Notes: generated by a model not told the origin, from the sequence alone. 64,000 nucleotides of DNA from Pavona decussata (GCA_977016875.1 CDRNST010000031.1:186001-250000); one strand, 5' to 3'; positions 19,879 through 41,730 are shown, counted from the stretch's first letter. Numbers and translations: made by a program.

Positions 19879-20823
19879 ATGGCAATACAGACCAGACGAA
19901 ATGTTACTGCAATGCAGTTAGACAAAGCAGAAGGTTCCTTTTTTCCGCTTATTCCTCACGTTACACCAATTTGGCCGCCGGATAAGCGCATCGAAAAGAT
20001 GAAGCCGAGAAGATCTACGTATTGGAGGCTTGTCCGCAACAAAATGATCGTCCTGAGATTTCTTCAAAGCATAAATCCGACAATTACAGATTTGTTTCCT
20101 AAAGTGCTGGATGAAGAGGAAAGCGGGAGCAATATTGTTACTCTGACGAAGAACTTTCGAGAAGAGCAAAGGAAAAAATACGAACGCGTTTACGAGATTC
20201 AGATGGAAGCATATCTTAGGGAAGAAAAGAAAAAAAGCATTTGGGAAAAGGTTCGAGACTGTGAATGTGCTACTCATGAATGGAGAACGACGAGAGAGAG
20301 TCTGGCGACTAGGAAGAGAAATTCAACAAACGTAACAGACAGAACTCGAGCGACTGCGAAAATTGATCTTTTGGGCGAACACGACATTCAAACTGCTAAC
20401 AGCAACGAGAACGATACATCATCGAAGACACAGCAAAAGAAATACAAGGCTCAGACATTCAGAAGCCTGAAGGAAGATTTTGGTCTTCCAGTAAAAACTG
20501 ACGAGATTTATTTGCCTCAGATATATGGAAGGAGAAAGGGGGCGAAACGACCAATGAACGACCCTCGCTTTCAAAGGCTGTTAGATGCACTCATTCCTCC
20601 CCAAGACAAAAAAGAAGAAGATTTTGGGACTAGCACGGATAAAAGTCGCAACAAGACCACTGCAGAGATGGAAACTGTTTCAAGAGGCAGATTAAATGGA
20701 AGGAGTTTGCACGAAAAATGGAAGGAAACCACCGCACCGATGAATATTCGCAAGAATTCAATGCCCAACAGTAAACAGACTAAGTTTACTCGGCCAATAG
20801 GTGGGCTGGGGCACTCGATTTAA
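19879..20823 (+). CDS. Uncharacterised DPRF-motif protein (cluster gene 3), 314 aa
   Basis: Long ORF with aatATGG start. Motifs VTPIW, YWRLVRNKMIVLRFL, YLPQI, NDPRFQRLLDALIP, RKNSMP. Confidence 0.82.
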   Translation: MAIQTRRNVTAMQLDKAEGSFFPLIPHVTPIWPPDKRIEKMKPRRSTYWRLVRNKMIVLRFLQSINPTITDLFPKVLDEEESGSNIVTLTKNFREEQRKKYERVYEIQMEAYLREEKKKSIWEKVRDCECATHEWRTTRESLATRKRNSTNVTDRTRATAKIDLLGEHDIQTANSNENDTSSKTQQKKYKAQTFRSLKEDFGLPVKTDEIYLPQIYGRRKGAKRPMNDPRFQRLLDALIPPQDKKEEDFGTSTDKSRNKTTAEMETVSRGRLNGRSLHEKWKETTAPMNIRKNSMPNSKQTKFTRPIGGLGHSI

Positions 20824-23800
20824 AACCTGTCAAGATTGACAAAAAATAACACCAGTAACAAATGGATGTAAACAATGTACCCAGGAAAAATGTTAATTAA
20901 GGGAAAGACATTTTAAACATGTTGTCAGACTGTTTCAACTGGGCAACAAACATGGTAATTGAAAAAGCGCTGTGGAGAAGAGCGGATTAGAATTTCCAAG
21001 GATTTCTCTCTTCTGCACCAGATCTCTTTGAGTTGGCGTAGCACAAAGAAAAGCTGAACTAACTTATTTCTGACAAACGTAGGTTAGAACCAGGAGTTAC
21101 TCTAAAGTCAAGTAAAACCTGAAGTTTTTTATTATAGCTTTTATCGTTTGTCGCGTAATGTGAGTCACTTTGACATGGGACTCTTAGCTTGCTGTCTGTC
21201 ATTCCTAGGTGATGGAGTCGAATGAGTGCGCTAAAAAGAGGTTTATAGTTGATTGTCAAAAATGACTCGCACTTGTTCTGGTTTTTCTTCATTACGCATT
21301 GTGATTGGTAAAAATAAAACTCGCGCTATCAGCTTTCTCAACCATTCAGAGCTTAAGACTGTACAAATCAACAGTGTTGCCAGTTTTTTCAACAATTAAG
21401 AAGTAAAGACATAGAGTTGCTCACAAATGTTTTCCCGCACTTGACGCTATTTCTCACAATTTCATTTCTGATTGGCTCACTCTATCGTTTTTGTCTGCTT
21501 CGAGCAGCTAGAGTGATTGTTTATGAATGTACAACACTCAACGCTGGGAGCACTCTGTATCGCAGCTGCTTTTTAGTGATTGGTTCATTTCTGTTCTCGA
21601 TGTGGTTAATGATGCTAGGAGAATTTCATCTTTCCTCATTGTTCTCACTAGAAACCGCTTGACTGTGTGCGTAACACTATCAAACTGATCCTTTTGCGGA
21701 CAGAGAACAGTCATTTTCTTGTTTATCAGTGTTAAATTTTTTGAGAGGACATTTTATTCAATCGTACATGACCTGATTGGTTATTACATTTTTTTGACTA
21801 CCCGGATGTGACCACATGTCTTTAATTTTTCACTCAGTTTTGGTCAGTTTTGTTATCTCTGAGAGTCTTCGTTGCAATTGTTAAGTGTTTATCGTCTAAA
21901 AATTTGGTGTTTGGTTTAGCCTGAATAGATGCAGTGCACAATCTTGGTTTCCAGGGGCGACAGGATGATCATTTATAACCTAACTTACAAACTTAAAACA
22001 GGTAATATCTTACCACATTTACTTCAGATTTCTAACACCGGAGAGGGGAAGGGCATTATAACTCCGAGAGTGTTAGAGTTATGACCATGAAACATGGAGG
22101 ATGGATAGCACGTCTAAAGATGTTTACTGTGACGTCGCAAAGAGACGTGATACCGTCATATGACGTAAGAATGTGGTCACGAGTTCCAAACGGCGGCCAT
22201 CTTGGATTCGCCTTGTGTTGGATTTCTCGATTTTGACCCAGAACTTCAGAAAACCTCTAAAGTTGAACAAAAAGTAATTAAAACCCATACAAGAACACTA
22301 AATTGATATAAAAAAATGAACGTTACTGTAAGAAAATTTCGAAAATCTGTAACTAAAAACACCTATTTTATAGTTCAAGAAAACTATAGTATAGCAATTT
22401 TAAACAAAGCAGTAGAATTCAATTTGCAATCCATTTTAATTCTCTATGTCCAGAGCCAGAAACAACTGTATAAAACTTTAAAAAAATTCGAATAATTTTA
22501 ACTGACTGGACCATTTGGAGAGTTTCCTTTAATTACAAATGAATATGACTTTTAGCTTGTTAAAGTAATACGAAGAAAAAGTGACTGACAAACCCTGTTT
22601 AACAAAAACAACTTGAAAGAGGCAAATCAAGGGTGGTCAGCAGTGTATCACGCTCTGACAAGCTGAACAAGGATCTCACGCAATATGTTTGGATTCGCGA
22701 TATTTGCTATGTTCTTGTCTAAATGCAAGCCTTTTAATTTTTGTTTGTTTGTTTTTAATTTGTTGCTGTTTTTAATTTGTGTACGTGTATTTGTTCACGG
22801 TTATTCGTTTTAACCTATCACAAAGCAGCATTTTAAGCTTACCCTTGTTTTAAATTTTAGGACAGTTTGTTTTCACTTACTTAGCTTTTCTGGCGCCAAT
22901 AAATGTTATTAGGCAATCTTAATAAAATACCAGCCGTTCGTTCAGCCTTACATCCTTCAAGTTGTTTTATTTAGTCCATTGCTGATCCTTATCTTGACGA
23001 AGATCCAGCTACAAGTTTCTCCTATTTGTAGAAGTGGTCCATGCTAACTTCCATTAAAGATGCTACAACCAGTGACAATATGTTGTTATACTTTGGCCTT
23101 GATAGCGTCTCCCTCCCTTTCCCACCATTCAATATTGTTTAGAAACCGTTACACGCGCCCTAAAAGATGTATTTTTCCTTGTGCTATCCAACATTGCACC
23201 AGGGGAAAAGGGGCGAGTGGTCGAACAAATTATGACATTCGTTGTAGCTAGTCGCCATTTTATATGAAGTGTATTGGTTTTTGTCTCTTTGCGCCGAAGA
23301 TCATCAACTGTTCTCTTCTGAAAGACTTGCCTGGAAGAGAAAACTTACATTTTTTTGTGAAAAAGGATGTTTTTGGAACACGTCATCTCTCCACCCTCCC
23401 CGCCCCCGGTCGCCCACAAAAGAAAATAAAAAGTTATTAGAAACCGCCCTAATGATGTAAACCCATTTAACATGACCAGACATTAAAATATTCGTGTCGG
23501 AAGTTTTGCTTACAACAAGTCATTACAAAGGTTATACATGTGAATGTTAATTACGTACTAGCTGTTCATAATAAATTTAAGGTGTACATTGTTAAGATTA
23601 ATTATTTTCGTCAGTTAATATTTTAGCCAGTTTCCTCCTCACGAATGCTGATTGTAAAATAAAATCTTCAACTGTGAAAATTGAAATCAACGCACTGTAA
23701 ACTGGGTAATATTTTTTTCCTTAAGGTCTCGGTAACGGAAGTTAAATGGTTTGAAGGAAACTTGACACAGTTTCGTGCGTTCCCAAGTAGAACAGACCAG

Positions 23801-23908
23801 TATTTAAGTAATTAAATCGACTTTTAAAAGTTTGCATTTAAACGGTACAATAATGACGTTTACAAAGAGGGATTACTGAACAACGAAAATAAGGATGAGA
23901 GGGATTTG

Positions 23909-23916
23909 TGACGTCA
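23909..23916. promoter_or_regulatory. CRE palindrome TGACGTCA upstream of cluster gene 4
   Basis: Perfect 8-mer about 115 bp upstream of ATG 24030. Confidence 0.4.
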
Positions 23917-24029
23917 TTTGACCATCTGCAGTGCACGTACGCAAGTCAATAAAAGGCCGTACTGCATATCCAGTTATAATCAGCGTTTGATGGAGTTTGA
24001 AAGCTAAGTTGCGTAATCAGTCCTTTAAT

Positions 24030-24749
24030 ATGGCTGAGTTACCAGATTTGAAACCCGTAGTGAGTATTACACCCATTTGGAGAAGGAGAAAGAAGAGAAT
24101 AACATCGTTTAAACAAGCGGCCCTGATGGTTGTCCACTTAATGCGGCTTGGTGCACACACACGTTTGTCAAGTCTTACTGTTGAAACTATGGCGGAGCAA
24201 CTAAAAGAACTCGCTAACGAAGATCAGGAGAAGGAGGAACGGATAAGGAAGGTACAGCGCCTGGCCAAGATTAAAAAGAAAGAAAATGTTGAGCTTGAAG
24301 AATGGAAGCAACACTACTTGAAGATATACAGGGAAAAGTTTCATCGTCTCACGCTGTTCGAGAAAATGAATCGGTACAATGGAAATCACTGGATGGAAAA
24401 AACCACAAACAATGCAACTTTAATGCCTTTTGGTATTGAAAACACAAAACTCGCAATTGGGAGTCCTACGTTTATGATGAACCAAAAACTTGTCACTGAA
24501 CGCAAAGCAATCACACCAGCGCCGAGATCTTGGCTGGCTGAAGATTGCGTGCTGAAACGATCCGATGAAATTGTTCGTAGGATAGCTGTGGTGCCTCATC
24601 AAGCGGACGGAAGACTTAACAGTGGCCATCAACTGACGAATGGTTCAACAAAGGACATTAAAAAGAACCTCCAAGTCACTTCGCTTGGCGGAAAACATGA
24701 TCCAAGATTTCAAAAACTATTACGCTCACTAACACCCATTGGATCCTAG
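24030..24749 (+). CDS. Uncharacterised DPRF-motif protein (cluster gene 4), 239 aa
   Basis: The first ATG is at 24030 (the track start at 23997 is TTG). Motifs LPDL, ITPIW, FKQAALMVVHLMRL, HDPRFQKLLRSLTPI. Confidence 0.82.
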   Translation: MAELPDLKPVVSITPIWRRRKKRITSFKQAALMVVHLMRLGAHTRLSSLTVETMAEQLKELANEDQEKEERIRKVQRLAKIKKKENVELEEWKQHYLKIYREKFHRLTLFEKMNRYNGNHWMEKTTNNATLMPFGIENTKLAIGSPTFMMNQKLVTERKAITPAPRSWLAEDCVLKRSDEIVRRIAVVPHQADGRLNSGHQLTNGSTKDIKKNLQVTSLGGKHDPRFQKLLRSLTPIGS

Positions 24750-25064
24750 AGACTGTTGTACCTTTCACCATGCGCGACTAGCTGCTTAAGTTAGACTTTA
24801 AAAAAAAGCTTACATCAAGGAAAAATGAACGAGGAAACTGCAGCACTCTATATAAACAGAAGAAAGCGCAAACACCTTGCACGAGGAACGATTTTATTGT
24901 AATGTGCTAGATTGAGAGCGAAGCTGAGCCAATTTCACTGTAAAATGATAAACGGACCTACACCGCCGGCGTAACTTGTACTAGCATTGCACCTTTACAT
25001 ACATTACGATAAACAAAGAGAATCTTTCATGGAAAGATATTTTCAGAAAACCTGTCTGTGATAC

Positions 25065-25152
25065 TGCACGTGCGCGTACAGTAGCGCGTAAACCAACGCG
25101 GGCGGGTACAGTAGCGCGTACACCAACACGTGCGGGTACAGTGGCGCGGACT
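25065..25152. repeat. 30-bp minisatellite, about 3 units
   Basis: Variants of the unit CACGTGCGGGTACAGTAGCGCGTACACCAA. Confidence 0.75.
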
Positions 25153-25623
25153 GGTGAAGTGGTCCAGGCGCATAAAACCCGTACTCGGTAATATCATCAC
25201 CAACAATCTGTACATACATGACTAACAAAAGCAGTTCATTAAATAAGCACAATATTCAGTCTAAGCTTCAATTGATAGAGTGGGCTCTTACAAAAGGTTA
25301 AAAGCATTTAACACCTATTATCAACATGCAAATTTTCTTCACTGATTTGTACATATCCTTATCGTGCGCGTTAGAAGAATTGGTTTGAGACATTTCATTT
25401 TTGGTGATCATTTCCTTTATTCTCATGACCTAAATGTTTAATCAAACAGTGATATTGTAAGGAGAAATAACATACTTATCACTGCTTGAGTTTATTGAAG
25501 GGATAAAGCATAAAGATATGTCCCAGGGATGCGTCTCGGGTTTTTTTTCTCTCCTTTTTTTTCTTTTTCTGTTGGGGGAGTGCCTTCCATTTCTTATTTC
25601 AGAAAATAGCCATTTTCAGACCT

Positions 25624-25806
25624 GGTCCCAGTTGTTCAAAGGACGGATAACTTGATCAGTCCACTGGACTAGTCGCCATCCAGCTGATAAAATGTATTGG
25701 TTTGAGCAAGAGAGGATTCATCCTCTCTTGGTTCGAGTAAATTTTATCCCTTGGAGAAAGATTTATCCACTAGATAAAGTTATCCGCTCTTTGAACAACC
25801 GAGGCC
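25624..25806. mobile_element. MITE with imperfect TIRs
   Basis: GGTCCCAGTTGTTCAAAGGACGGATAAC ... GTTATCCGCTCTTTGAACAACCGAGGCC. A related partial copy lies at about 55147-55230. Confidence 0.7.
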
Positions 25807-25925
25807 TGACTTCTAAGATCAATGCCCATTTTCAGAGCTGGCGTTTGCTAACTGAAGTAGTAAACTGAGCTTTATCCGGATTGAAAAATGTTTTTCTCTT
25901 ACTTCTCTTTCTCTCTTTCATCTTT

Positions 25926-27592
25926 TGTGATAAAGATTATAACTACGTATACTTTTCTGTACTCTCACGCTCCCTCGGAATCCATACCCAGTCATGACAG
26001 AGCGGAGGGCAAGGTCAGACCAAACTGCTGATTTCGCTAGCCGATTGTCAGAACTATTTAATACACCGTTATCAAAGTCATTTCGAAACCTACAAATCAA
26101 ATACAGATAGAAAGCTAAATACAGTCGAACCTGCATATAACGGCCCTGTATTAAGCGGCCACCCTCTATTAAGCGGTCAGTTTTCAAAGTCCGGATTGTT
26201 TGCTCATACAAACGCTGTATTTGTTACCTGTATTGAGCGGCCACCTCTATTAAGCGACCGCGGCCACCTCTATTAAGCGACCGCGGCCACCCTGTAGCAG
26301 TCCTATGTTTGTCTTTCTTTGTTATTGTTACCTGTATTAAGCGGCCACCCTTGAATGGAAACTAAGCCATATGTTATTTTATGCGGTATTTGATTGTGTT
26401 TAAAATGCGATCCAGCATCACTATAAAGAAATAACATGTACAAAGCTACTTTAAGCTGTACTCGGCCGTTTAATATAGTTAACGCTTTTCAGATGCCCGC
26501 AATGTGCTGAAGTACATTACCATATTACGAACGCTAAAGAAAAATTTGTTTTGAATATGCTTCACTCTTTAGCGAGAAATTCCTCTTTAATTAACTTGTT
26601 CTTCAGCCATGTGACATTGAACATTAAGTGTAACAACTATGAAATGACGGAATGAGATATTTTGTTGTGAACTGTAAGTCATAGAAATGGAGCACTGTTT
26701 TCCGTAGGAGAGTAGAGGACAATTTATTGTATAGTACTTTTACACAATGTTACGTATATTATACCGTTAAGTTAAAAGTTTGCACTGAACTTTGTTTAAA
26801 GTATTGATCACGTGAAAGAGTGTTGATTGCCCTATTATTTCTTTGCATGAAGTGTTTTTGTATGATACGCCATTAAAATTGACATTAGACCACGCCCAGT
26901 GAGTATTTTTAGTGATCCTGTATTAAACGGCCACCTGTATTAAGCGGCCAGTTACTCAAGTCCCGAGGGTGGCCGTTATATACAGGTTCGACTGTAATAC
27001 AGTAAGCGTATAACTAACACAAGTGCGTAAATCAAAGATAATTTCCCGGTGCTCTGTCTCTCTGCGTAAACGGCGCTAGCGAAATACAAAACTAAACTAT
27101 AGGAACACTAAATCGACTGGTGAAATTAACAACGAAAGCAGAATATAATTAAATTGGTTGAAGCACGCGCACGTGCACGTGTGCAATTTCGCACATGATT
27201 GCGCGAAACACTCCACCTTACAAAGCGTGACCAATACTCGATTAGAATAACTAATACTGAAATCGTTCACAGTTCATTGTTCAGAATTCCGCCTCTCTCC
27301 TCGTCAGCAGGCACCAGCACTACCAGCCTTTGCACAGGTCGCTGAACGGTTACGTATCCCTGACCTTAGTACTTGTTTACCGGTTCACCTGGTTTAGAGT
27401 TCTTATATTGCACCTCCACTTTTCGCACTTTGCCGTCTTCTACTGGCCTCTGACTTGGTTGGAATCTTGAATCAGTACAACGTCACCCACCATCACGTTG
27501 CGTCCCGCTGTATGCCACTTTTGATTAATGATTAAACTTGGGAAGAAATCTCTGGTCCACTTCCGCCAGAACGCGTCGACTACACGTTGATC
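25926..27592 (-). mobile_element. BEL/Pao LTR retrotransposon 3' relic (integrase C-terminal region, PPT and probable 3' LTR)
   Basis: Minus strand reads RVVDAFWRKWTRDFFPSLIINQKWH...VGDVVLIQD...RGQ, then a frameshift, then DGKVRKVEVQYK...QRPVQRLVVL (DUF5641-type). A purine tract AAGGTGGAG is followed by TGTTTCG at 27210. The LTR end near 25926 is tentative. Confidence 0.75.
26122..26994. mobile_element. Tc1/mariner(pogo)-type MITE
   Basis: 24-bp TIR CAGTCGAACCTG(C/T)ATATAACGGCC with 1 mismatch, TA on both flanks, and subterminal TATTAAGCGGCCACC repeats. Confidence 0.9.
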
Positions 27593-27764
27593 ATGACCGG
27601 CAGACTTGATTAGTTCAGAAACTGTACCCTTTGAAAAAGCAACTAGCAAAAGTGTATCTTCCAATGGATGGGTCAGATTTTCCGTGTGCCTATTGGTAAG
27701 ACCAGTGCAAATGTAAACGCAACTTTAAAATGAATGCATCACTTCAAACTCAGCTCAGGCTTTG

Positions 27765-28060
27765 GTGATGTTTATTGTGCTTTCCATAAGTGTTTTAACT
27801 TTTCAGTCCGTAAATGAAATTCTTAAGTGTGACCATTCAAATGAAAGCTGCTTAGCAGTACTTTCCTGTGGTGCTGTTTATTGTGCTGTACAAGGTGGCT
27901 CTAAATTTTGAGTCTGTGGGTGAAATCCTGCAGTATGTCCATTCCAATGAAAGCTACTGAGCAGTACTTTCCTCTGGTGCTCGGTTTATTGTGCTTTACA
28001 AGGTGGTTCTAACGTTTGAGTATGTGGACAAAATTCCCTAATGCACGTGGCCATTCAAAG
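27765..28060 (+). repeat. ~107-bp tandem satellite-like repeat, about 3 units
   Basis: Recurrent CCATTC(A/C)AATGAAAGCT...GCAGTACTTTCCT...GTTTATTGTGCT. Confidence 0.8.
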
Positions 28061-28215
28061 AGTGGTCGCTCAGTTCTGAGAAATGGTTCCATGTGGCGTT
28101 GTTTTTCTTCAATATTTTGGAAAAGAAAGTGATATTTTTGTTAACGTTGCAGTCTATTACTAGTGAGTAAATTAAAAAGGATTGCTGTAACCCCATGCAC
28201 TTCTGGTAGTATTTT

Positions 28216-28848
28216 TTACCCCTTGTGAAAATCTGCGTTTCCCTTGTTCATTATTTTGAACACTAAACGGCAAGTGTCGTTGAGGCAAATGTCTTTAAAA
28301 CAAATCTCATCCCATTTGTCGTAGGCTTTTCTGTTAGAATCCACTAACTTATTTCTATCCGCGTGAAGATGAGTTCGTAAAGGAACAAGTCGCTCAAGCA
28401 GACGTGTAAATCTTGGATCTTGTAACGGATTCCTGTCATAAAGGTAAGTGGATCGATAACCTTGGCGTTCAGTTTGAGTTGCCGATTCGAATTCAAGATT
28501 ACCTTTGTTTGACTCAGTTTTAGTCCATGCAATCTTCTTTACTTCTCCTTCTTGGTTGAGTTGTGGTTCATTATTATTCTCCGTTTCCCTGTCAGAACAG
28601 CACTCCTGACAAACTTGAGAATCAACCAATCCGTCGTTCGTCTTAAAACTAGTATCATAAACATCACCTAAGTGTTGAAATTGTGCGATTGCTGGCTCAG
28701 AAGCGCGTTTCTTCCACGTTTGATCATTGCTGCGGTTTAATTCATTATTTTTGTCGTTTCCTTTTCGATATTTTTCTTTTTCAACTTTGTAGCCTTCGCC
28801 ATCTTTTTCCCGTATTTTCGCCAATGTCTTACCGCCTATGAACGCCAT
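28216..28848 (-). CDS. Uncharacterised DPRF-motif protein (cluster gene 5), 210 aa; possibly N-terminally truncated or pseudogenising
   Basis: ORF with KRASEP and LQDPRFTRLLERLVPL. An in-frame upstream ATG at 28896 is separated from it by two TAA codons. Confidence 0.7.
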   Translation of the reverse strand: MAFIGGKTLAKIREKDGEGYKVEKEKYRKGNDKNNELNRSNDQTWKKRASEPAIAQFQHLGDVYDTSFKTNDGLVDSQVCQECCSDRETENNNEPQLNQEGEVKKIAWTKTESNKGNLEFESATQTERQGYRSTYLYDRNPLQDPRFTRLLERLVPLRTHLHADRNKLVDSNRKAYDKWDEICFKDICLNDTCRLVFKIMNKGNADFHKG

Positions 28849-28955
28849 ACGTATAGCTTTCCTTTACAGTTTGTAAATTATATCTTATTTCGCCATGTAC
28901 TGAAGACCAGAACACTTCTTGACAGATCCAATGAATCAGAATCGAATTTAAAGCT

Positions 28956-28969
28956 GTTTCCATGAGAAC
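28956..28969. promoter_or_regulatory. RFX X-box-like site
   Basis: GTTTCCATGAGAAC, 12/14 match to the palindrome GTTTCCATGGAAAC, 60 bp upstream of ATG 28896. Confidence 0.5.
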
Positions 28970-29875: not shown

Positions 29876-29889
29876 GTTTCCATGGTTTC
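29876..29889. promoter_or_regulatory. RFX X-box-like site between divergent genes 5 and 6
   Basis: GTTTCCATGGTTTC. Confidence 0.4.
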
Positions 29890-30564
29890 GTCTCAGTTGA
29901 AAGACCACGCGGGATTAGTTGTAACTCTACTGGCACAAGCTGAACAATTGAAGTTTTTAATCTTTTATCTGTTGTATTGTAAGTTCAAACAACAGCCCAC
30001 AAACACACCAATATTTCATTTCAAAAAATTCACAGACGTCTCGTGTTGTATACGTCATTTGCTGCACGAATGTACTTGGTGAATATTACAAATACATCAG
30101 TTTGCGCGCGTTCAACGAAATGAGAAGTGTACGAATGGCATGGAAGTATACTTAGCAGAGTCAGAAGTACTTAACAACAAGCAAACGTATCCATTACGTT
30201 TTTAGCGGACAATAACTGATTCAGTTTGACAAGGCGAAGAGCGTCGACTAACCTTTGAAACGTAAATCGTTCCTACTCATTATTAGTTACGGTTTGTGCG
30301 CGGAACGGCTTGAAAAAAATCCATTTGTCGATTGGTTGAGGAAATTGTGTAGAAAAAGAAACTGGAAACATCGTGTTGAACCTAATCGGCTTCCTGTGAC
30401 TACCTAAACAGTGCAAAGCATTATTATTGAACAAAACGTTCGCTAGACAGCTTGACCAACTGCGTGGTTGCATGTATTCAACTCAGTTCACTTTTTATCG
30501 CGTAAAACGGAAAACAAGGATTTCGTTTAAGCCGACGATCGAATATCGTCGCTAATACACAAAG

Positions 30565-31077: not shown

Positions 31078-32925
31078 TAACTTTGAAGCGCTATTGAAAC
31101 TACGTCGAAAATGAACTATCAATAAGTGTTTCAAAGTGCTTGTACAGTTCAAGTTAGAGACTATATTAATAAAAGTGCAAAATATAGAAATATATGGCTT
31201 CTCTGACTGCATGAACTTCAGTATGAAATATCTTGAGAACGTAAGAAACGATGGAAAATAAAGACAAACGCAAAGTAGGAATTTAATTTGGTATATATAT
31301 GATCGAGGTAATTTAAAGACCGCCAGGCGACTTTGAACGCAAATCATTTAGAATCTGGTTTGCTATCCACAAACGTACGTGGCACGTACAAGCACCTTAC
31401 TTATCTTTGCTCTGTGAGTTGTATTTTATTATGCAATAAGTCACTGAACAGAGACCGGAATTTGGGGATAAGGAAAAGCGGATGTGCTAGTTATTAAGGT
31501 TTAAATTGTTCCCTCTCTTTCACAAAAATGCTGAAACGAGCGCTTTATTTTTCAATGGCTTATCACGAAGAGCATTTGTACACAAACTATCCGTGAACTA
31601 GGTAAACTGTCCGACAGACGAGTTCACAGTGAAGCCGGCCGGCTGTGAGAAGTTTGTTTGTACGAGTAAACAAGGTGCTAATCCTTTTCAGTGTCCCAGA
31701 GGGGTAAGACCATCTTGAAAACCTAATTAACGAAATACAACACTCGTGCAATTTTGAACGAAATAGGAGAGCAGTAAAGGTGGTGAAAACATCAGTTTGT
31801 CGTGTTGTTCAACACACAGTATTTCAAGAGCGTTTAACACTCGCCGATATGTCTCTGTTGTGCTTATTAAAACGTGTTATATGTGTGCGCATTGAACATA
31901 GCATTGGAATAAATGTGTATTAAGCTTCCAGGAGTGGAACAAATCAATTTGCAAAATAGTTAAAATACCATCAAGTAATATAGGAAACTTTTATTTGGAA
32001 AGCTTTCATTTGAGTGTAAAAGGAAAGGAACTTGAAAAGAAACCTGATCATGAAGAAATTGCGCATTGTTTTACGCGTCAACGGGAATAAATATCACAAG
32101 GGTACTGTTAAGTTTCCTTTTTAGATATAATAAATAAGTACGATTTACACCCTTAGAGAAACATTTATGAAACTATCACCTGGCTAAATATTTATGTTTG
32201 TTCACTGATACTTCTGTATTCTCGTTCAAAATTAAAACGGATGTATTGTATTAATTACCGCTAAAAGACCTTTTAATAAGGTTCTCTGGTAATCTCGTTC
32301 TCATTTCATTGGCCGTTACATCAAGTATATATAAACTTGTTGCTCTTGAGGCTGAGAAGCATCTTACTTATCATCGACAAAACAACGATGGATCGATTTG
32401 CCGTACGATGGTGTAACACGATAGTTCCTTTACAATCTAATCATATGTTTTCAAACCATTATGCATAGTTTATCAGTTCCCTGGTACACAATAGAAGTAA
32501 TAAACTATCACTGATTACTAAGACAAATTGAGAGTAACAATACAAACACACTGTTTTCGTAGGAGCGCGATATGGCTATGACATACGTAGTGAGTAAATA
32601 ACAAATTATGCAATTAGTTTTTGTACCCAAAAATAGGCGAAAGCTTTTTAGCCGTAATGACGCAAAACGCTTCTTCAACGTGTTCAGTCTCTATAAAAAC
32701 CAATTAAACGTCGTGGCTATGGCTTTAATTGTCAATTATCCCTAACTAGCCAATCAGGAAAGTCATTAGAAACAACAATATTGATAATGTCGGTGTGTAC
32801 ATGTCAAACAGAGATTACGGTTTTAAATTCCATTCACAAAAACACTGCTTTCAGTACAGAGCGAGTAACGTGCAAACAGGATACGTTCCAGTGTTTCTTC
32901 GACGACAAAGACCCCACCATATGCC

Positions 32926-33486
32926 ATGAATTCAGCTATAAAATTCGACCAAGAAAATGCAGATATCGAGAAGAACGAGAAAAGAATCCCCTACAGGCTT
33001 TGCTACAAGGACAGGATAAAAGTCATAAACATTCGCCCGACGAATGAAGATAAAATAATTGACACGACTCGTGATCAGCTCCACGAATCAGACTGCCCAG
33101 AAACACGAGAAGTCTTGCGAATGGCAACCGTTAACTCCGTCGATGCAATTCAAACGAGGGCGATTCACGAGCATTATGGAAATATAAAAAATCGAAGTGT
33201 TACTTCTATGGAACGACGAGCGACCTCAGGTTTATACCTTCCTTGTTTACTGGGAAATAAGGACAATATTCACGCTCCAGTGTTCAATGTGGCGACTTAC
33301 AAGGGATTTAGAACTCAAGAAGACCGAAAGTGTTGGGCTTTTACCAAGACTTTAGAACGTGATCAAAAGGAGTTATTCGGCGGGAAAGAGAAACGTTTGA
33401 CGTCGACCACAGCTGTGATAGACATCTCAAAACCAGCACAGCTGCACTCACGGTACGCCATCTTGCATCCAAAGAGCGCCACGTGA
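32926..33486 (+). CDS. Uncharacterised protein (cluster gene 7), 186 aa
   Basis: ORF with gccATG start and a CCAAT box at about 32750. Motifs RRATS and LYLPCL. Confidence 0.55.
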   Translation: MNSAIKFDQENADIEKNEKRIPYRLCYKDRIKVINIRPTNEDKIIDTTRDQLHESDCPETREVLRMATVNSVDAIQTRAIHEHYGNIKNRSVTSMERRATSGLYLPCLLGNKDNIHAPVFNVATYKGFRTQEDRKCWAFTKTLERDQKELFGGKEKRLTSTTAVIDISKPAQLHSRYAILHPKSAT

Positions 33487-33606
33487 CCCAGTCTATGAGC
33501 TTGACTATCTTGGAAACACATAGGCAACTCAGGATGTAATAGAACTGCAGTGAGTTGTGACTCCTGTAGCAATACGAGTATAACTATGTTCATAGTTGGA
33601 CAGATA

Positions 33607-33845
33607 GGGCCAGTTATTTAAACAGAGTCTAACTTAGGCCGCGGCTAAGACAATCAGTGGGGCTCCAAATCGGTTTAGAAGTGGTTTATTTTAAGTAGGT
33701 AAATAGTTTTCTAGTCTCGGGATGCAAGCCCTCTTGTTACCATCAGCAGCAGACAATGTTTAGATATGACTGTTGGCAAAATTGAAAATGGCTTAGAACG
33801 TGGTTTTGTTAAACACCGTCTAAACTGTCTTTTAACAACTGGCCC
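33607..33845. mobile_element. MITE (PIF/Harbinger-like termini)
   Basis: GGGCCAGTTATTTAAA ... TTTTAACAACTGGCCC, with ATA/TTA flanks. Confidence 0.6.
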
Positions 33846-34114
33846 TTAATGTTTATCCTGTGGATGGTCGGTGAAAGAACATTTTCATGTGACTGATCAT
33901 CGAAAGCCGAAAACTGTCAAGAGGCGTTCACGCAAGAAACTTACGCTGGCTAAAACCCAGGACAGTGTCCAGTAACGCCAAAACTATTGACTTATTGCTT
34001 AAGTTGTAGTTTGATGGAAATCCTCTCCAGATCTAAGGTCTTCTTTCTGGTACAGTTTTTATTAAAAATAATAATAACGATAAGAAACAGTTCAAGATTG
34101 AAGAAGAATGATAG

Positions 34115-34123
34115 TGATGATGC

Positions 34124-34157
<34 letters not shown>
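34115..34157. repeat. (GAT)n microsatellite
   Basis: Direct inspection. Confidence 0.95.
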
Positions 34158-35623
34158 CATTACCATGATAACAATCACGTTAACGACAATAAATAATGAT
34201 AATGACGAACCTATTTCGTGCTATTTTACGTCTATTTAGGTGTAGTTTGCGCCTTACATTATCGTGAATTAAAAGTAAAAATTAAGAATTTTTTAAGTTA
34301 TCAAAAGTTGAGAAAAAAGAAAAGTCTTCAGTTTCTTGCACTTAGAATTGTTCATCACCAGTGCAGTTCGGCAATGAATTTCAAAGTAATGGAGCAGCAA
34401 TAGGCCATTTCTGAGTTGCTCTCAACCTCATTACGAAACCATGGCTAGTTGCGAAGCCTTTCATTAGGACAACAGGCGCACAATTTTGCTCACGTGGTCA
34501 AGGACGATTGATAGTCTGTGTCCGCAATATTTAATGAATGTGTTGAGCGCGCAGTTAAAATAAGACTTCAGGGATTATTTCAGTCTCCGCAATATATGAC
34601 AAATCAGACAGGATAGCGTTACAGCTCAAACCATTTAAAACAGTACAGTGCAACTATCGACTGAAGCAACAGATATGTACTGAGTGGTACAAAGTTCAAT
34701 TACACAAAATTGCGGCACTCGCGAAATATGGTGAGGTTATCTCTCAGTCATGGTCTGTTTTCGATGGCCAGAAAGCTAAAAAAGGAACCGTATTTGTTGG
34801 TTTGCATTTTGGCCCTCTGCCACTTTTTAGACCAATTTTAGCAGCCGTAAAAAACAGATGACCCCGGTCCCTTAAAACTGAGCATCGGCTGAGTGCACGC
34901 AAAGGCTATGCACTCATCACAGGGCGAGACAGATTCGAGTTTGTTCTTCTTAATATATAACCAAAGTTTCAAAACTATTTGAACTAAGAGCAAAGACACC
35001 TTCATCCCCCAAGGCTGGGTCTTGTGGAAGACAACACCATTTTGCGGTAGCCCCGGGTTACTTAAATCAAACTCCTTCTGTTTCCTTGAGATAAGTTTGT
35101 CATGGTACCCTTCTCAGTATAAAAAGCGGCTGGGGTAGCGTTTAGAACTAACAACAATAATAATATAATCTTTCCGGTAAACATTAAACATTGAATTGCC
35201 TTATCGTTTATTGAGGCGGAAATCCCGCGTAACTGAAGTAGGGTATTGGTCTATAATCTGTAGATGGATGTACGACATACACCAAGACAGGAACTTCAAG
35301 AGAGAACAATAGAAGAAACAGCAGCAACAAGGTCCCTACCCTAAAAACAATTAAACTGACAGCTCTATAGCAGCGTTATCCCACTAAACTGGAGATGAGA
35401 CCCCAAAAGGTACTCAGCCATCAGTGACTGGAAGGTGTGAATGAAACCGACCTAAAATGTCCTATTAGGCTCAGACTTGCCCTTATAAAGCCCAGCTAAT
35501 GGCCCACAAGGTAAACTAAAGTATGTTCCTCTCCTTATAAAACCCTTTAAAAAATCAGCGGAAATTTCAAATCAAAGAAAGTATATTTTCCACTATTAAA
35601 ACATGAAAAGCAAAGCTATAAAA

Positions 35624-36082
35624 GTTGACATCCCATTTGCGCAATTTATCAAAGTCAAACAGGACTACATTTCCTTACTGGTTTTCCTTATGGTCACCGA
35701 TCCCGATTTGAAGAACTAGGAGAAGATTCTACATTTCTTCGTATGTTATAACACTTTTTAATCATAAGTTTAAACAGGCCAAGGATGATTTTAATAGTGC
35801 ATTGATGGGTTTGTAATGCCCTAACCAACTTCCACTGAATTAAAATATGAAGGCAGACTAAAGGTGACATCCCATTTGCGCAATTTAATTAACGTCAAAC
35901 CGGACCACATTTCCTTATTGATTTTCCTTATGGTCACCGCGATCCCGATCTGAAGAATTGGTTGAAGATTCTACATTTCTTCGTATGTTTTAACAACTTT
36001 TTCTTCCGGATCATAACTTTAAACAGGCCAAGGATGAGTTCAATGCCTTGATGGGGGTTTGAAAGTACGCTAACCAACTTCC
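35624..36082. repeat. Tandem duplication, two units with a period of about 240 bp
   Basis: GACATCCCATTTGCGCAATTT at about 35627 and 35865. Both units share TTTTCCTTATGGTCACCG, GAAGATTCTACATTTCTTCGTATGTT and CTAACCAACTTCC. Confidence 0.85.
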
Positions 36083-36769
36083 TATATCAAAAAAGCAAAC
36101 AAATTGTTGAAATTTTTGGAATAATTGCATTCACATAGGCCATGCCATAATTAATAGCCTGTTCCAGGTATTCAGGAGCGAAGAAAATTGCGATGCGAAA
36201 GAATAATTAAAGCGACGAGACCATCCTTCTCGTTTATTAGCCCCGCTCACAATATTTTTCTCCACTCCCTGAAAGCTAGGCTACTGAAGAAATCTCAATA
36301 TATTAGTCATGAAGAAACGGAAAAAAAACGGCGTTTGATTGAATATATTTAGTAATAAAAATCAGCGAAAAATCAAGCGACGTTTTGATATCATCAGTGC
36401 CATCATTATCTAGCTAGGACAGAAGGCCGGCCAAAAGCATGTACGTCATCAGAACTTAACGTATGGGAAAAAGTTGACAACAAATTGCGTGCATAAATGG
36501 AATAAAGTAAGATTAGGTGAAGATAAAATAATTGTTTTAATAATAAAAGTGTTCGTCACAACGTCGTAAAAGTGTTAGAAAGTCTGTAAATAAATTGCGC
36601 GTGTTAAGCAAATAAATTAGCACGGATTTCGCTGAGTTTTACTCATTAAATGTAATCATTTCGAAGTTTATTCCTCCGAAAACCGTTGTGATCATAACAA
36701 TTAAAGAAACCCACACGCGAGTTCTCTATAAATTACAAGGTTTAAGCTTAGGTTTTAATTAAAACTTGG

Positions 36770-37681
36770 TCACTTCCAATGTCTCGTAAACACGGTAGTT
36801 TTTCTTGCAATCTCGTTATCGGTTTTCTGCAACTGGGATATCTTTCTCCGGTTCTTGTCACGGACTTTCATGACAACATGGTAAAATTTAGGATCTCTGG
36901 GATTTAAGTGAGGGATTTTAGCGGGATCAGGCATTTTTATAACCTTTTGGTAAGTAACTCCGCGAAACGTCCTTGTGTTCCAGGATGTGTCGTTCTTGGG
37001 AGCTTTTTCTTGATTCCGATTCAAGTTTTTCTCACGAAAATTTTCTCTGTCTCTTTTTAATTCTTCCTCTTCCAACAAGAACGGAAAACAGCTTCCAGCG
37101 TAAGCGTTTTTTCTCCTCCGATTAAGCCGAGTAACCCACGAGTTGTCATCGATTTCAACCGCGGCGTGCAAAGGCGGCAATGGTGCTCCTATGGAAGTTT
37201 TTCTGTTGTTCTCTGAAATAATATTAAACGTTTTCTCTTTACTCTTAGCCGTCAAATTTAAGAGCATTTGTCTTTTTACCTCAGTGATTGACTCCCTTCG
37301 ACCTTTCAGCCACATTGGTGTTTGATCCAAAACAGAGGCGCGTTGCCTCCCAATTTCCTCCCTCCCAACCGGCTTCACCTCGACTGCCTTCTTCTCTTCT
37401 TGTGCTAAAGGAGGCAGAAACTTCGATAATGATCTCTTTTGTGACTCCTTGAAGTCTCGCTGTCTTTTGTTGCATTCATTGGCAACTCGTCTCTGTTCGC
37501 GTGAAATAACACTTAAGTTTATCTCTAATTCTTTCAACAGGCCAGCGTTGGTGTGGCTCGCATGTTTCAATCCGTACTTGTTCGCGATTTTAATCTTGCT
37601 TCGTTTTGGAAGATTGCGAATTCTAATAAGTTCCTGATTGAGTCGCTCGTCTGCGTTCCTTCTTGCCGCTTCAAAATCCAT
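36770..37681 (-). CDS. Uncharacterised coiled-coil/DPKF protein (cluster gene 8), 303 aa
   Basis: The first ATG is at 37681 (aaaATGG; the track start is TTG). Motifs NAGLLKELEINLSVISREQ...RQRDF, FLPPL, PLPPL, RDPKF. Confidence 0.8.
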   Translation of the reverse strand: MDFEAARRNADERLNQELIRIRNLPKRSKIKIANKYGLKHASHTNAGLLKELEINLSVISREQRRVANECNKRQRDFKESQKRSLSKFLPPLAQEEKKAVEVKPVGREEIGRQRASVLDQTPMWLKGRRESITEVKRQMLLNLTAKSKEKTFNIISENNRKTSIGAPLPPLHAAVEIDDNSWVTRLNRRRKNAYAGSCFPFLLEEEELKRDRENFREKNLNRNQEKAPKNDTSWNTRTFRGVTYQKVIKMPDPAKIPHLNPRDPKFYHVVMKVRDKNRRKISQLQKTDNEIARKTTVFTRHWK

Positions 37682-37896
37682 TTTGACGATAATTAGAAAA
37701 GACCGTTTATAGAACAACCAACACGATCCTGGATAATCCAAAGTATTTTAATCGCGTGAAAACAATATTTGAGAAACTTGCCACAAGCACGGAGTCAGGT
37801 AAAGTTACAGCCCCCATTTCGTGTCAATCTCATATGGTTATAAGTGTTGCAGTGCCACTATCTTAGTGTTAGTCCTTCCAGTTGACCGTATTTCAA

Positions 37897-37910
37897 GTTG
37901 TCTTGGTCAC
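37897..37910. promoter_or_regulatory. RFX X-box-like site
   Basis: GTTGTCTTGGTCAC, about 215 bp upstream of ATG 37681. Confidence 0.45.
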
Positions 37911-38789
37911 CTCAGCGAAGATAAATCAATTTGCTCTGCAGAGCAACAGGCCGTAATTGAGTGACTCAGTTCGACTCAGTCCAAGGATCGAGATTAAGTG
38001 CGAAAATAGAGTGAAGTTACCTCAAATACACGCTCACAGAAAGTTTCGTTTTGCAGTGGTTTCGCAGTCCTCTGGTTTCGGAGATTGTAGACCAACGCAC
38101 GTAATATTCAGTTTTGTGTGTGTTTTTCTGTTACAATGCCTTCCGTAGCCTTAAGCCATGCACCAGCAGTACTCAACAATGCGCGAACAGACACAAAGAC
38201 TAACGACTGGCGGCCGAAAACCGCTGACGCAAATATCACCTTGATATAAATCACAGTATAAGATGTCGCTTTGACAGTTTGGACCGCAACAGCGACAACC
38301 TTATAGCTTAGCACTTAAGTGTCGAAGGACAAGATGGGACCACTGATCTCGGCGTCGTAGAGGGAAACAATCAGGTAAATATTAAAAAACACCGTCAAAC
38401 AGCGGTGTTTATGTGGCTTTGTCCCATGGCTTACATGATATTGTGTTTTATTGTCCGGTTATTGGATAGTAGGGCGACAAATCTCAAAAGTTGTTTGCTC
38501 GATAATAACAGTGCGGGTTTCATATGCAAATACGTGTGTAGTGTATAATACGCATCAGGTAAACATTGTGCGTTTACGTACCACTCGTGAAATATAAATG
38601 CAATATTTGTTTGCGGAAAAATCTGATGACCAAACGTGTTTTTAATACCACTCAGCTAGCACTAAGTGTGTGGATACATAGGTGCGTCTGATTGGCGCGG
38701 CTTTCTCTAGTTCTCCAGACTCGATCGAGGCAGTTAAAAATTAAACGAAAAGCTGTCACTATCTTATGAAAGTGTTGTCCGATAGGCCC

Positions 38790-39370
38790 AGTTCAAGAGT
38801 CAACTGCTCAGTAATTTCGTTTGAATGGTAACACAGTTAGGATTTCATTCACAGACTTAAAAGTTAGAACCTTGTACCACATAATAAACAGCACCACAAG
38901 AAAGCAGCTTTCATTCGAATGGTCACACTTTGGGATTTTATCCATCAACGGAAACTGGCGGTTAGTACCACCTTGAACAGCAGATCTAGACGGCTCAACT
39001 GCTCAATGGCTTTCATGCGAATGGTTAAACCACATTGTACAATATGATAAACACCACCACAGGAAAGTACTGCATACTCCACCGTATTTACAAACTGCTA
39101 GCAGTCTTTCTTTTTACCTCAGATACTAGACGCAAGCGGAAATCTAGAAATTATCCAATGAATGGTCACACTTTAGGATTTCATTCAGAGGCTCAAAAGT
39201 TAGAACCACGTTGTACTAGTATAACACAGGCATACAGCAGGCAGCGCAAAAAAAGCTGCCGCCTGCTTTAAATTTACATGTACTTTAGGGCCTTCATTTG
39301 AATCGGTTCATTGGCTTCAGTTTGAGTAGAATTTCATCCAAAGGCTCAAAAAATACTTTTAACCACGTTG
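38790..39370 (-). repeat. Decayed array of the same satellite as 27765-28060, reverse orientation
   Basis: Recurrent GAATGGTCACAC, GGATTTCAT, CAGCACCAC and GGAAAGTACTGC. Confidence 0.7.
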
Positions 39371-40950
39371 TTGAGTCGCAAAAGATTAAAAGCTCGACAG
39401 GAAAGAAAATCATTTTCCATACAAAACAAATTACATGAATAAAGGGAGAAAAGCCGAAAGTTTGGTTTTAAATTTATTGTCTTCGGTTCCTGTGTCACTG
39501 TAATTATAATTTTATCTGGTATACCTTTCTAGATTATTTGTTTTACCTAAAAGCTGTTTGTTTTGGTACTTTAGGCAGTGCTGAAATGGAATAACTTGAG
39601 CATCAGGCCTTCGTTAGGGGAGGGGAGGAAAATACAAGCAGGGAAGGCATAATTATAAACCCTATTTTCGATTTTATAGATATATTAGAGACTGAAACTG
39701 GAACCGGCGCCGAAGACTGAAACCATTCGGCCGTCAGAACTGAAAAACATCGCCGGAAAAAAATCAAACATAAGAGAAAGATACAGAGTAAATTGGAGAG
39801 GAGATGGTAGAATCTTTACTAAAGCCGGATCAGCGTCCCCAGTTAGCTTGGAATTACTTCGAATCCGCCCTGACCCTCTTACGTTTATACACTGATCTAT
39901 TTGTTGCTAGCAGCTGGGTCAGCTTAACTCTCCATAGATTATCACCTAGTTAGTAACAATCTTGAAGACCAATGCAAAAAGATGAGACTGGTATCTCGTT
40001 TCTGTAATCCAATTCTTTCCAACGACCCTTGCTGAGTCTCTCTCCTTCTCTGCCTATCTCTCCTCCCCTATGTTTTTGTTTTTCCCTCTCCGTATGCGTC
40101 CTACCCAGCCTGATCCCACGACTCACCCCACTCCCCAAGAAAGAAGCATTCTTAATATTGCAAACCATATGCAAGAACAACGGGAAGTAAATTTGGCTCT
40201 GCTTGACTCCCATGCAAAGTGCACCATCTTTCTTTGTTGGATTGTTCTCGAATGTAGATTTTCCAGAATTACTGCAAAATGCCACGCGAGACAGCCCACC
40301 GCGCAGCTGACAAATAGGTGTTTATGAAAAATTCGCACTTAGTTAAAAACAAATAAAAAGGTCGAGTTTTTTTTCACATGGCTAGCGAACTATTTAAGAC
40401 ACCCATTTGAACTTTGTTCTTTAGGATTCAAATTCCTGGTGTGTTGAAAGAAAGAAAGAAAGCTAAGTCATCATTAATGCATGTTAATCTAGGATTCTCG
40501 CGGGACCTGTTAAACTGAAAGAGCCTTTAGAAATGTAAATTATGTCACAATATATATTCAAAACAAAGACCGAGACAAACAAATCGACGGGTATATTTTA
40601 TTAGGGCTTTATTCATCACTTTTAAAGAAAGATATTTATCGTCGGATATCCGATCTTTATAAGGAAACGCAAAAATTTTAAAAACGCTTGAGAGGCTGAG
40701 CGATCAAGAGTTTGTCAACGCAACGTTGGTTTTTGTATTCATAAACCTCTAGACAGAAGGATTGGGTTTCGTAATACAACAACAAAACGGAAAGCAATTT
40801 GTCACTCGTATCCACTAATGCGGGACGGAATTCGAAGATTTTAGCGAAGTTGGATTGTTGGGTCTGTGGAAGGGATTTTGGCTCGTACACGCAAGCTGTT
40901 ATAGACGAATCGAGACCGATTTTTACTTGTTTAAAGGACATTTATTGAAG

Positions 40951-41730
40951 ATGAGTGTTAGTTCTTCAAGGTGTCCACTGATTCGAATCAGCAAAACTGG
41001 CGAAATGAGGCTCAAAAACAAAGTTGGAAACGCAATACTGAAAGAGAACGCGTACGAAGACCGCGCTCTGAACACAACGCTGGACACCCTATCTAGACAT
41101 CAGTTCAGGCAGGATAAATACATGACTTACAGGCAGCTAGAGTTTGCCACGAAGCAGGTCTCCGCTTCAGAAGAGAGACCTAGGACAATGAATATGGAAA
41201 GTAAACATTCTCAATCTAGCGAGCAGAGTTTACCTCCCATAGACTCACTGCGAAGGTCGAATGTAGTGGCTCCGAATATGGAGGAAAGACGTTCAAGTCA
41301 CACCGCAGAGGCGGGAGGGAACAATAAGGCGAAAGGACGGTGGGAAAAGGCGATAACTCTTGTTCGACTAGCAGTACAGAACAGACCGGCTAAAGACTCC
41401 AGTGGCAAGGCTACAACTCAGCATAGAAAAATCTCTGGAATTCATGAGATACATTCGAAGGACATGAACGCGAACCAACTGCCCCCAATAAACCCTCGTT
41501 GCGAAGGAGGACCCAGAGAACCTTCTTCTGTAAAGGGACCCCTGCGAAAACAGCCGAGTTTGCCAGAAATGCTTAAGGTTTCGAGGGAAAAATCGCAAAA
41601 CGGCCTCAAGGATCCTAGGTTTATGAAACTAGAGCAGTGTTTGAGCGAAACGAGGAGTGCACGTGACGGAAAACATCGAAAGAATTCAAGAACGAATCCA
41701 CTGCATGACAGAATTCGTTATACGCGCTGA
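40951..41730 (+). CDS. Uncharacterised coiled-coil/DPRF protein (cluster gene 9), 259 aa
   Basis: The first ATG is at 40951, just after a putative acceptor (tttacttgtttaaag|). Motifs NAYEDRALNTTLDTLSRHQ...RQLEF, SLPPI, RWEKAITLVRL, QLPPI, RKQPSLP, LKDPRFMKLEQCL. Confidence 0.83.
   Translation: MSVSSSRCPLIRISKTGEMRLKNKVGNAILKENAYEDRALNTTLDTLSRHQFRQDKYMTYRQLEFATKQVSASEERPRTMNMESKHSQSSEQSLPPIDSLRRSNVVAPNMEERRSSHTAEAGGNNKAKGRWEKAITLVRLAVQNRPAKDSSGKATTQHRKISGIHEIHSKDMNANQLPPINPRCEGGPREPSSVKGPLRKQPSLPEMLKVSREKSQNGLKDPRFMKLEQCLSETRSARDGKHRKNSRTNPLHDRIRYTR

Follow-up and report, generated by a model that had tools for sequence, protein, structure and literature searches.

The locus of the three peptides

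We examined three open reading frames (ORFs), ORF1, ORF2, and ORF3, in a 64,000-nucleotide stretch of DNA of the stony coral Pavona decussata (the window), the sequence of which contains no N. In each of the three proteins the first-pass annotation of the window had marked one short peptide as a helix of calmodulin-binding type, and it had speculated that the proteins are ligands of calmodulin or of a calmodulin-like protein, possibly the one encoded by a gene next door. Translation reproduced the three peptides exactly, at 20008-20067 in ORF1, 24081-24149 in ORF2, and 41326-41370 in ORF3, and the spacings quoted for them (W1-M8-L14, F1-A5-V8-L14, and W1-I5-L10, respectively) were correct. All three peptides lie inside real genes whose products end in a C-terminal DPRF motif. 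The true start of ORF2 is the MAEL methionine at 24030, where its orthologues also begin, and that of ORF3 is MSVSSS at 40951. A fourth DPRF gene, ORF4, has no basic N-terminal helix, nor any other basic helix like those of ORF1, ORF2, and ORF3. The genes and their elements are as follows (aa, amino acids; pI, isoelectric point; AF2, AlphaFold2; pLDDT, predicted local distance difference test).

19879-20823, plus strand: ORF1, intronless; 314 aa, basic (pI 9.9), mostly disordered; scleractinian/anthozoan orphan family
19978-20073, plus strand: N-terminal helix of ORF1 (aa 34-65), coming after FPLIPHVTPIWP and containing the peptide at 20008-20067
20560-20598, plus strand: DPRF motif of ORF1, DPRFQRLLDALIP; nearly invariant in the ORF1 alignment; AF2 helix 229-238, pLDDT about 78
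24030-24749, plus strand: ORF2, intronless; 239 aa, basic (pI 10.2); paralogue of ORF1 (N-terminal module plus DPRF motif); syntenic orthologues in five other coral loci
24081-24149, plus strand: basic cluster and helix of ORF2, RRRKKRITSFKQAALMVVHLMRL, identified by translation and orthologue conservation
24699-24737, plus strand: DPRF motif of ORF2, DPRFQKLLRSLTP, at the extreme C-terminus; D, R, F, and RSLTPI invariant in the ORF2 alignment
28216-28848, minus strand: ORF4, 210 aa; has YLYDRNPLQDPRFTRLLERLVPLR and a C-terminal Cys-rich block
40951-41730, plus strand: ORF3, intronless; 259 aa, basic (pI 10.4); its family is a separate one, older and represented across Hexacorallia
41326-41379, plus strand: mid-protein helix of ORF3, KAKGRWEKAITLVRLAVQ (aa 126-143), also written as KGRWEKAITLVRLAVQNR; an isolated helix in AF2
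41611-41649, plus strand: DPRF variant of ORF3, DPRFMKLEQCLSE, with the second Leu changed to Glu and the trailing Pro absent; AF2 helix 222-239

Conservation and predicted structure of the helices

All three helices are conserved in orthologues, as judged from alignments of 20 sequences for ORF1, six sequences plus the gene at locus L045 for ORF2, and 22 sequences, including Nematostella, for ORF3; by these alignments the conservation is far above chance. For ORF1 the block FPLIPHVTPIWP...KRIE...R[RK]x[ST][FY]...LVRNKMIxFxFLQSI was the best-conserved part of the protein, and the helix consists of a basic cluster, R[RK]x[ST/N/A][FY], and then LVRNKMIxFxFLQSI. The columns of the register V52-M56-L59-I65 were 100% bulky hydrophobic. 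The Trp that had been named as the first anchor (W49) did not hold up: it is replaced by Arg in 60% of the orthologues, and the position is bulky hydrophobic in only 40%.

In ORF2 the P, W, and S-F-K residues were invariant, and helix positions 1, 8, and 14 were bulky hydrophobic in six of six orthologues from syntenic loci (columns F1, V8, and L14, 100%); the distant L045 gene retained the pattern as KKKKKKKRPAKHFFRKVSLLVNALKIF. Directly ahead of the helix the orthologues have an invariant Ser in an R-x-x-S-F context, which hints at phospho-regulation; the Lys/Arg runs of ORF1 and ORF2 could equally be nuclear-targeting signals. In the ORF3 helix W-E-K-A was invariant and I/L/V/R/A nearly so, with the anchors conserved in 100% (W1), 95% (I5), and 91% (L10) of the sequences.

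The alignment-based AF2 model of ORF1 was mostly disordered (mean pLDDT 53.7), with helices at aa 34-65 (pLDDT 56-80), 82-143, and 229-238. The model of ORF3 (mean pLDDT 62.3) had helices at 24-74, 126-143, 204-218, and 222-239; the second of these is isolated, has a pLDDT of about 81, and coincides with the segment marked in the first-pass annotation. Because the three helices are among the best-conserved parts of their orthologue sets and are predicted by AF2 to be helical, we take them, on alignments and models, to be functional elements.

Information content of the calmodulin-type motifs

The residue sets for strict motif matching were those in Table 1 of Mruk et al. (PMC4076516), and the predictor thresholds, which include a charge of at least +1 per 10-mer, came from the same paper. 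Strict matches were found in ORF1 (1-8-14 at aa 52-65 and 1-14 at aa 49-62), in ORF2 (1-5-8-14 at aa 27-40 and basic 1-8-14 at aa 21-37), and in ORF3 (1-5-10 at aa 131-140). The W1-M8-L14 spacing called in ORF1 is present, but Met is not an allowed anchor, so that those residues belong strictly to class 1-14 and not to 1-8-14. A motif scan for IQ motifs on the three helices found none. Canonical RVxF motifs for protein phosphatase 1 (PP1), LxVP calcineurin motifs, and class I or II PDZ-binding C-termini were candidates that we rejected on reading the sequences.

Calmodulin-binding segments classically have a net charge of +3 to +6. Our first motif scan used the canonical classes together with an added filter, a net charge of at least +3 inside the motif and no Pro. 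The charge inside the motif was +3/+4 for ORF1, +2 for ORF2, and +1 for ORF3, and only the motif of ORF1 passed the net-charge filter; with the flanking basic clusters included, the charges were +6, +8, and +4. The ORF3 helix also contains an invariant Glu. At least one qualifying motif was present in 35-73% of composition-matched shuffles. Eisenberg moments of the claimed segments were 0.23-0.40, and an equally amphipathic basic 18-mer occurred in at least 97% of such shuffles.

The motif-clustering predictor of Mruk et al. (PMC4076516) was positive for the three helices, but also for 30-75% of every cluster protein and for 100% of the shuffles. Peak motif-cluster scores were not significant (p = 0.22, 0.87, and 0.92), and the ORF3 helix had a low score. 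Thus, of the calmodulin-type motifs that had been called, the spacing and, apart from W49 of ORF1, the anchor columns stand, whereas an occurrence above composition-matched chance does not. A match of this kind is compatible with calmodulin binding and, judged from the sequences, has almost no evidential weight. As matters stand, the useful result is a negative one: because shuffled sequences score alike, finding calmodulin motifs in a basic disordered protein is essentially uninformative.

Protein families and modules

ORF1 had 38 full-length homologues with 38-99% identity in stony corals, including Pocillopora, Desmophyllum, and Acropora. All were unnamed or "uncharacterized," and no Pfam domain was found in any of these 38 orthologues. 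We conclude that the family is narrowly anthozoan, because a profile of 20 ORF1 sequences matched only 14 proteins among 1.84 billion representatives, all of them members of the ORF1 family. The Acropora millepora orthologue of ORF1 is LOC114965509. ORF3 had 49 orthologues, with 65-94% identity in Scleractinia and approximately 45% in Nematostella (LOC5516978) and Actinia; a word-index profile search with ORF3 returned nothing beyond Scleractinia and Actiniaria. Both genes are single copy in their own 602-Mb genome.

Searches for relatives of other kinds gave little. Pfam searches with approximately ten neighboring cluster proteins identified no family except in an ankyrin gene and in the PDZ and EF exons described below, and a PDB sequence search with the ORF1 and ORF2 family profiles gave chance matches only. 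In the ESM Atlas, ORF3 had no matches, and ORF1 had weak ones only (scores below 0.9, under the reliable range), all to chordate testis-type orphan proteins. The cluster proteins are all basic (pI 8.1-10.5) and rich in disorder-promoting residues. As far as these searches reach, the families are restricted to corals and sea anemones.

ORF1 residues 17-65 matched the ORF2 orthologue at locus L038 with E = 9e-6, and the relationship was visible in the ORF1/ORF2 alignment as well. From these alignments ORF1 and ORF2 are paralogues by way of a common N-terminal module, in which PIWP, a Lys/Arg cluster, a Ser/Thr in R-x-x-[S/T]-[F/Y], and the hydrophobic-rich helix follow one another, with a long charged helix after them. 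A comparison of the ORF1-family and ORF3 profiles gave no significant match. The grouping of the three helices in the first-pass annotation needs correction here: they are not homologous to one another, and that of ORF3 lies in the middle of a protein of a different family. The alignments thus distinguish two modules, the N-terminal module of ORF1 and ORF2 and the W-E-K-A helix of ORF3.

One database protein of 488 aa (P0045) joined an ORF1-like N-terminal module (PIWP plus helix) to a C-terminus resembling that of the minus-strand gene at 46536-48110. The resemblance, WMWxxFDxIM ... YF+xG..D.I.xRC, falls at window positions 46536-46760, the C-terminus of that gene. P0045 suggests either module shuffling among the cluster families or a fused gene call.

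The shared DPRF motif

A short helix, DPRFxxL(L)xxL, is common to all four proteins and lies toward their ends. When the ORF1 family was compared by hhalign, the DPRF segment was the sole match to ORF2 and to ORF4. A genome-wide search with the pattern DPRFxxLLxxL gave 51 matches versus 29 in the control, mostly in dispersed repeat or low-complexity sequence, and yielded one further gene that looked related, L013 (G000:C46:2810364-2813395). This is an unlinked, K/R/E-rich ORF of 348 aa that ends in SLDDPRFTNLLESLTP, the fifth full DPRFxxLLxxLxP carrier and one that lies outside the cluster.

Two further observations concern this motif and ORF4. A near-identical 32-nt match, which would encode DPRF(E/Q)ALLKRL, is dispersed in approximately 17 copies across contigs (L009, L010, L015, L023, L024, L029, and about ten more places in G000) with no surrounding ORF of at least 80 aa; it probably belongs to a repeat element that has no connection with the family. 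The Cys-rich block at the C-terminus of ORF4, EICFKDICLN(D/E)TCRLVFK(I/M)M (28240-28308, minus strand), is strongly conserved.

The gene upstream and the order of the cluster

The neighbor of which the three proteins had been suggested as possible clients was analyzed exon by exon. It and the genes between it and ORF1 are as follows (TM, transmembrane).

3896-8874, plus strand: TM-PDZ-EF gene, multi-exon; TM at 3899-4141, PDZ at 5282-5458, EF at 6913-7050 and 7649-7915
12939-13931, plus strand: orphan gene g12939, no Pfam match
15956-16747, minus strand: orphan gene g15956, no Pfam match

The PDZ and EF-hand exons are as had been described (Pfam PDZ, 2.5e-8; EF-hand_8/7, 8e-10 and 2e-8), and the best PDB sequence matches of the larger EF exon were the C-lobes of centrin and calmodulin (E = 1e-10 to 1e-8). 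The gene can therefore be called calmodulin-like on its C-lobe match, but it is not next door: g12939 and g15956 intervene, and from its end at approximately 8874 the distance is 11 kb to ORF1, 15 kb to ORF2, and 32 kb to ORF3.

The region from 12939 to 48110 holds approximately ten intronless genes, each coding for a basic disordered protein without a Pfam family, and the first seven (12939 to 33486) are conserved in order in other corals, g12939 and g15956 included. Relative to the reference order g12939-g15956-ORF1-ORF2-ORF4-g30565-g32926, the other loci were arranged as follows.

L035, L036, and L038 (three coral assemblies): orphan order preserved; walking upstream led from L035 to L039 and from L036 to L040
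L039: order preserved; all five tested TM-PDZ-EF exons syntenic
L040: order preserved; only one EF exon found
L037: order preserved from g15956 on; neither g12939 nor g32926 found in the locus itself, g12939 found in L041
L041: order preserved
L033 (Pocillopora): order preserved from g15956 on; the 10 kb upstream contain TMEM107 and ATP10 but neither a PDZ nor an EF exon
L045 (distant anthozoan): g12939-g15956-ORF1-ORF2 core retained; carboxylesterase and L7Ae genes upstream instead

In the Pocillopora locus no g12939 orthologue was found either, the flank (1-4054) being occupied by TMEM107 and the ATP10-family gene, and the 3.9 kb ahead of the block in L045 lacked the EF gene. Linkage with the EF gene thus holds in L039 and in part in L040, but fails within 10 kb in Pocillopora and within 3.9 kb in L045, where the orphan block is nevertheless preserved. 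By these comparisons the linkage to the EF gene is limited to some lineages and the orphan block is ancient.

Promoter elements and mapped contigs

Two promoter elements were placed close to the start codons of cluster genes (CRE, cyclic AMP response element); no strand is assigned to either.

28956-28969: X-box-like palindrome GTTCTCATGGAAAC, 108 bp upstream of the ORF4 ATG
23909-23916: palindromic CRE TGACGTCA, 121 bp upstream of the ORF2 ATG, present at approximately -120 to -175 in five of six genomes

The X-box-like pattern was enriched in the window (4 matches versus 0.37 expected). An element of the GTNNNCATGGAAAC type occurred at -103 to -132 of the ORF4 orthologues in all six genomes (the window, L033, and L035-L038) and stood out as the clearest island of conservation in a promoter alignment with little conservation elsewhere. 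In its conservation and in its distance from the start codon, within about 50-200 bp, it is as expected of RFX/X-box-controlled (ciliary-type) genes, a comparison that applies to ORF4 only. With at most one mismatch allowed and 600 bp searched upstream, no X-box was found for ORF1, ORF2, ORF3, g12939, g30565, g44395m, or g46536m; g15956m and g32926 had weak or isolated matches only. A literature search on the X-box string and on the orthologue accessions found nothing. The factor names attached here to the X-box, CRE, and SOX-like elements are used as leads only.

Upstream of ORF1 lie CCAAT boxes and a conserved block with the SOX-like AACAATAG. The blocks there are TTCCGCCAAT (19585-19595) and TCATTGGTC (19715-19724), both of CCAAT type, and AGATTTTGAACAATAGCTTC (19807-19826), with a SOX-like core; each was present in five of six genomes. 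A second CRE lies at 17157-17164, approximately 410 bp upstream of the minus-strand gene at 15956-16747. Also upstream of this gene (approximately 16930-17115) are a conserved palindrome, GCGCATGCGC, at -366, a CACCTG E-box at -319, and, at -187, AGGTAAGTT, which resembles an intron donor of a 5' untranslated region; g15956 may thus have a non-coding first exon.

Between ORF1 and ORF2, at 22951-23146, many high-depth contig fragments of approximately 35 nt from two coral metatranscriptomes matched the window and ran into unrelated sequence; the signal probably comes from a repeat that other loci or organisms also carry. Contigs carrying P0010 were considered as transcripts and rejected, because they are metagenomic DNA.

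Interpretation

As written, the first-pass annotation was a speculative motif call; what the locus holds is an unexplained anthozoan orphan cluster with shared short helical motifs. The reading that we favor, at a probability of roughly 60%, is that the three peptides are conserved helix-forming docking elements in basic disordered orphan proteins, the genes for which are intronless and form an ancient anthozoan block. Each protein would be a flexible, positively charged adaptor whose few short helices fold upon contact with partner proteins, and the basic cluster beside the ORF1 and ORF2 helix could act as a switch, either for nuclear targeting or under the control of phosphorylation. Several points weigh against this reading. 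The docking role is suggested by conservation together with disorder, the AF2 models have low overall confidence (predicted template modeling score 0.20-0.23), and the reads over 19500-25000 are low-depth contigs of uncertain RNA or DNA origin that fall on the 3' half of ORF1, with none on ORF2. In addition, the helices have features of calmodulin targets: an aromatic anchor (F/Y/W) stands beside a basic cluster, Pro is absent, and the 1-8-14, 1-5-8-14, or 1-5-10 spacing is conserved in all three families. In every orthologue of ORF1 and of ORF2, moreover, no motif cluster scored higher than the N-terminal helix.

These last points are also what speaks for physiological Ca2+/calmodulin-binding sites of the kind found in myosin light chain kinase (MLCK) and the calmodulin-dependent kinases (CaMK), or for sites binding a centrin-like EF protein, on one or more of the helices. 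The canonical motifs lie on segments that are predicted to be helical, are flanked by Lys/Arg clusters, have conserved anchor columns, and count as predicted binding regions under the thresholds of Mruk et al. (PMC4076516). However, the same thresholds and the scan for qualifying motifs also accept shuffled sequences, the peak scores are not significant, the hydrophobic moments are matched by at least 97% of shuffles, the in-motif charge of ORF2 and ORF3 is low, with an invariant Glu in ORF3, and the Trp anchor of ORF1 is not conserved. We regard calmodulin binding as possible but doubtful, and as most plausible for the N-terminal module of ORF1 and ORF2; the data favor calmodulin no more than any other groove-type partner. 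That chance alone produced the motif matches, in ORFs that are non-functional or non-coding, is scarcely credible: shuffles often contain a motif, but the conservation of full-length orthologues, with start, stop, and helices retained across Scleractinia (for ORF3 also Actiniaria), and of synteny already refutes it. A linked sensor-client locus, with the DPRF proteins as clients of the TM-PDZ-EF protein, is highly improbable. The EF gene is real and calmodulin- or centrin-like, lies upstream in the same orientation, and is syntenic with the cluster in L039 and, by one exon, in L040; its PDZ-EF part follows a positive-inside TM segment and is predicted to be cytoplasmic, on the same side as the DPRF proteins, which have no signal peptide. 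Against this stand the two unrelated genes before ORF1 and the remoteness of ORF3, the unlinked Pocillopora and L045 loci with their orphan genes in place, the general synteny among corals, which implies no functional link, at least two EF loops that read as non-canonical from sequence, and the lack of canonical PDZ-binding C-termini on the cluster proteins. The data give the neighbor no support as a dedicated receptor, and synteny does not support the idea of a sensor next door.

A role in cilium, flagellum, or germ cell could reasonably be either a rival or a complement to the docking view. In its full form, in which the cluster encodes structural proteins of cilia or flagella or of germ cells (spermatid type) and the helices and DPRF motif attach to the lattice of microtubules or to some other scaffold of the axoneme or nucleus, we consider it improbable. 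The genes lack introns, lie in a cluster, code for basic proteins, evolve fast, and are restricted to one lineage; the X-box-like element is the main footprint of the ORF4 promoter, the CRE and the SOX-like block are conserved upstream of ORF2 and ORF1, and the weak Atlas look-alikes are all of testis type. On the other side, the factor consensus sequences serve as leads only, no paper was found that quotes the X-box string, the X-box is at ORF4 only, no sequence match to solved axonemal proteins was found, and the Atlas scores lie under the reliable range. A scheme that combines the two ideas would make the ORF1/ORF2 module, and perhaps the ORF3 W-E-K-A helix, a Ca2+-dependent, phosphorylation-gated dock for an EF-hand protein (calmodulin, centrin, or the membrane-anchored PDZ-EF neighbor). 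The anthozoan-specific cluster of intronless genes for disordered proteins, which has conserved promoter elements of X-box, CRE, and SOX type, would then be a lineage-specific module that responds to Ca2+ in cilia or sperm, and the DPRF helix would bind a second common partner. We give this scheme little chance.

If the helices did bind calmodulin, this would be the first functional handle on approximately ten orphan genes of corals and sea anemones for which no database has an explanation. The by-products of the analysis are a clearly delimited cluster of intronless orphan genes with deep synteny, two helical modules that are conserved and, with the common DPRF motif, usable as baits, and conserved X-box-like and CRE promoter elements that suggest where expression should be sought.

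Comparison with known systems

The coral helices resemble those of MLCK, CaMKI/II, and calcineurin (motif table in PMC4076516) in having 10-20 residues with bulky hydrophobic anchors at canonical spacing. They also share with them an aromatic first anchor, flanking Lys/Arg, the absence of Pro, and disordered surroundings. They differ in having no homology to any known target, a low hydrophobic moment, little net charge in the ORF2 and ORF3 motifs, an invariant Glu in ORF3, and no enrichment over shuffles; the ORF1 helix, moreover, is hydrophobic around most of its circumference.

The basic effector domains of MARCKS and neuromodulin bind calmodulin or acidic lipids under the control of phosphorylation. 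As in these proteins, a Lys/Arg cluster adjoins aromatic and hydrophobic residues in the ORF1/ORF2 module, with a Ser/Thr in a basophilic-kinase context (R-x-x-S-F) that all ORF2 orthologues retain. In sequence they are unrelated, however, and Asn or Ala often takes the place of the Ser/Thr in the ORF1 family.

Motifs of the FxxLLxxL and LxxLL types are short amphipathic docking helices of disordered proteins that fold on binding. DPRFxxLLxxL is similar to them in its Asp-Pro N-cap and its hydrophobic residues at i, i+3/4, and i+7, and in being a predicted short helix common to otherwise dissimilar proteins; unlike them, it is not a catalogued motif as far as we could establish. Germ-cell genes that are small, basic, intronless or intron-poor, and lineage-specific also occur in clusters, for example that of the mammalian protamines and transition proteins. 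The coral cluster as a whole has no homology to these genes, and its Arg content is much lower than that of protamines. By analogy only, it is nevertheless like them in consisting of small basic genes in tandem whose evolution is fast except in short motifs, and its CRE-, X-box-, and SOX-like promoter elements may be likened, again by analogy, to those of germ-cell gene clusters.

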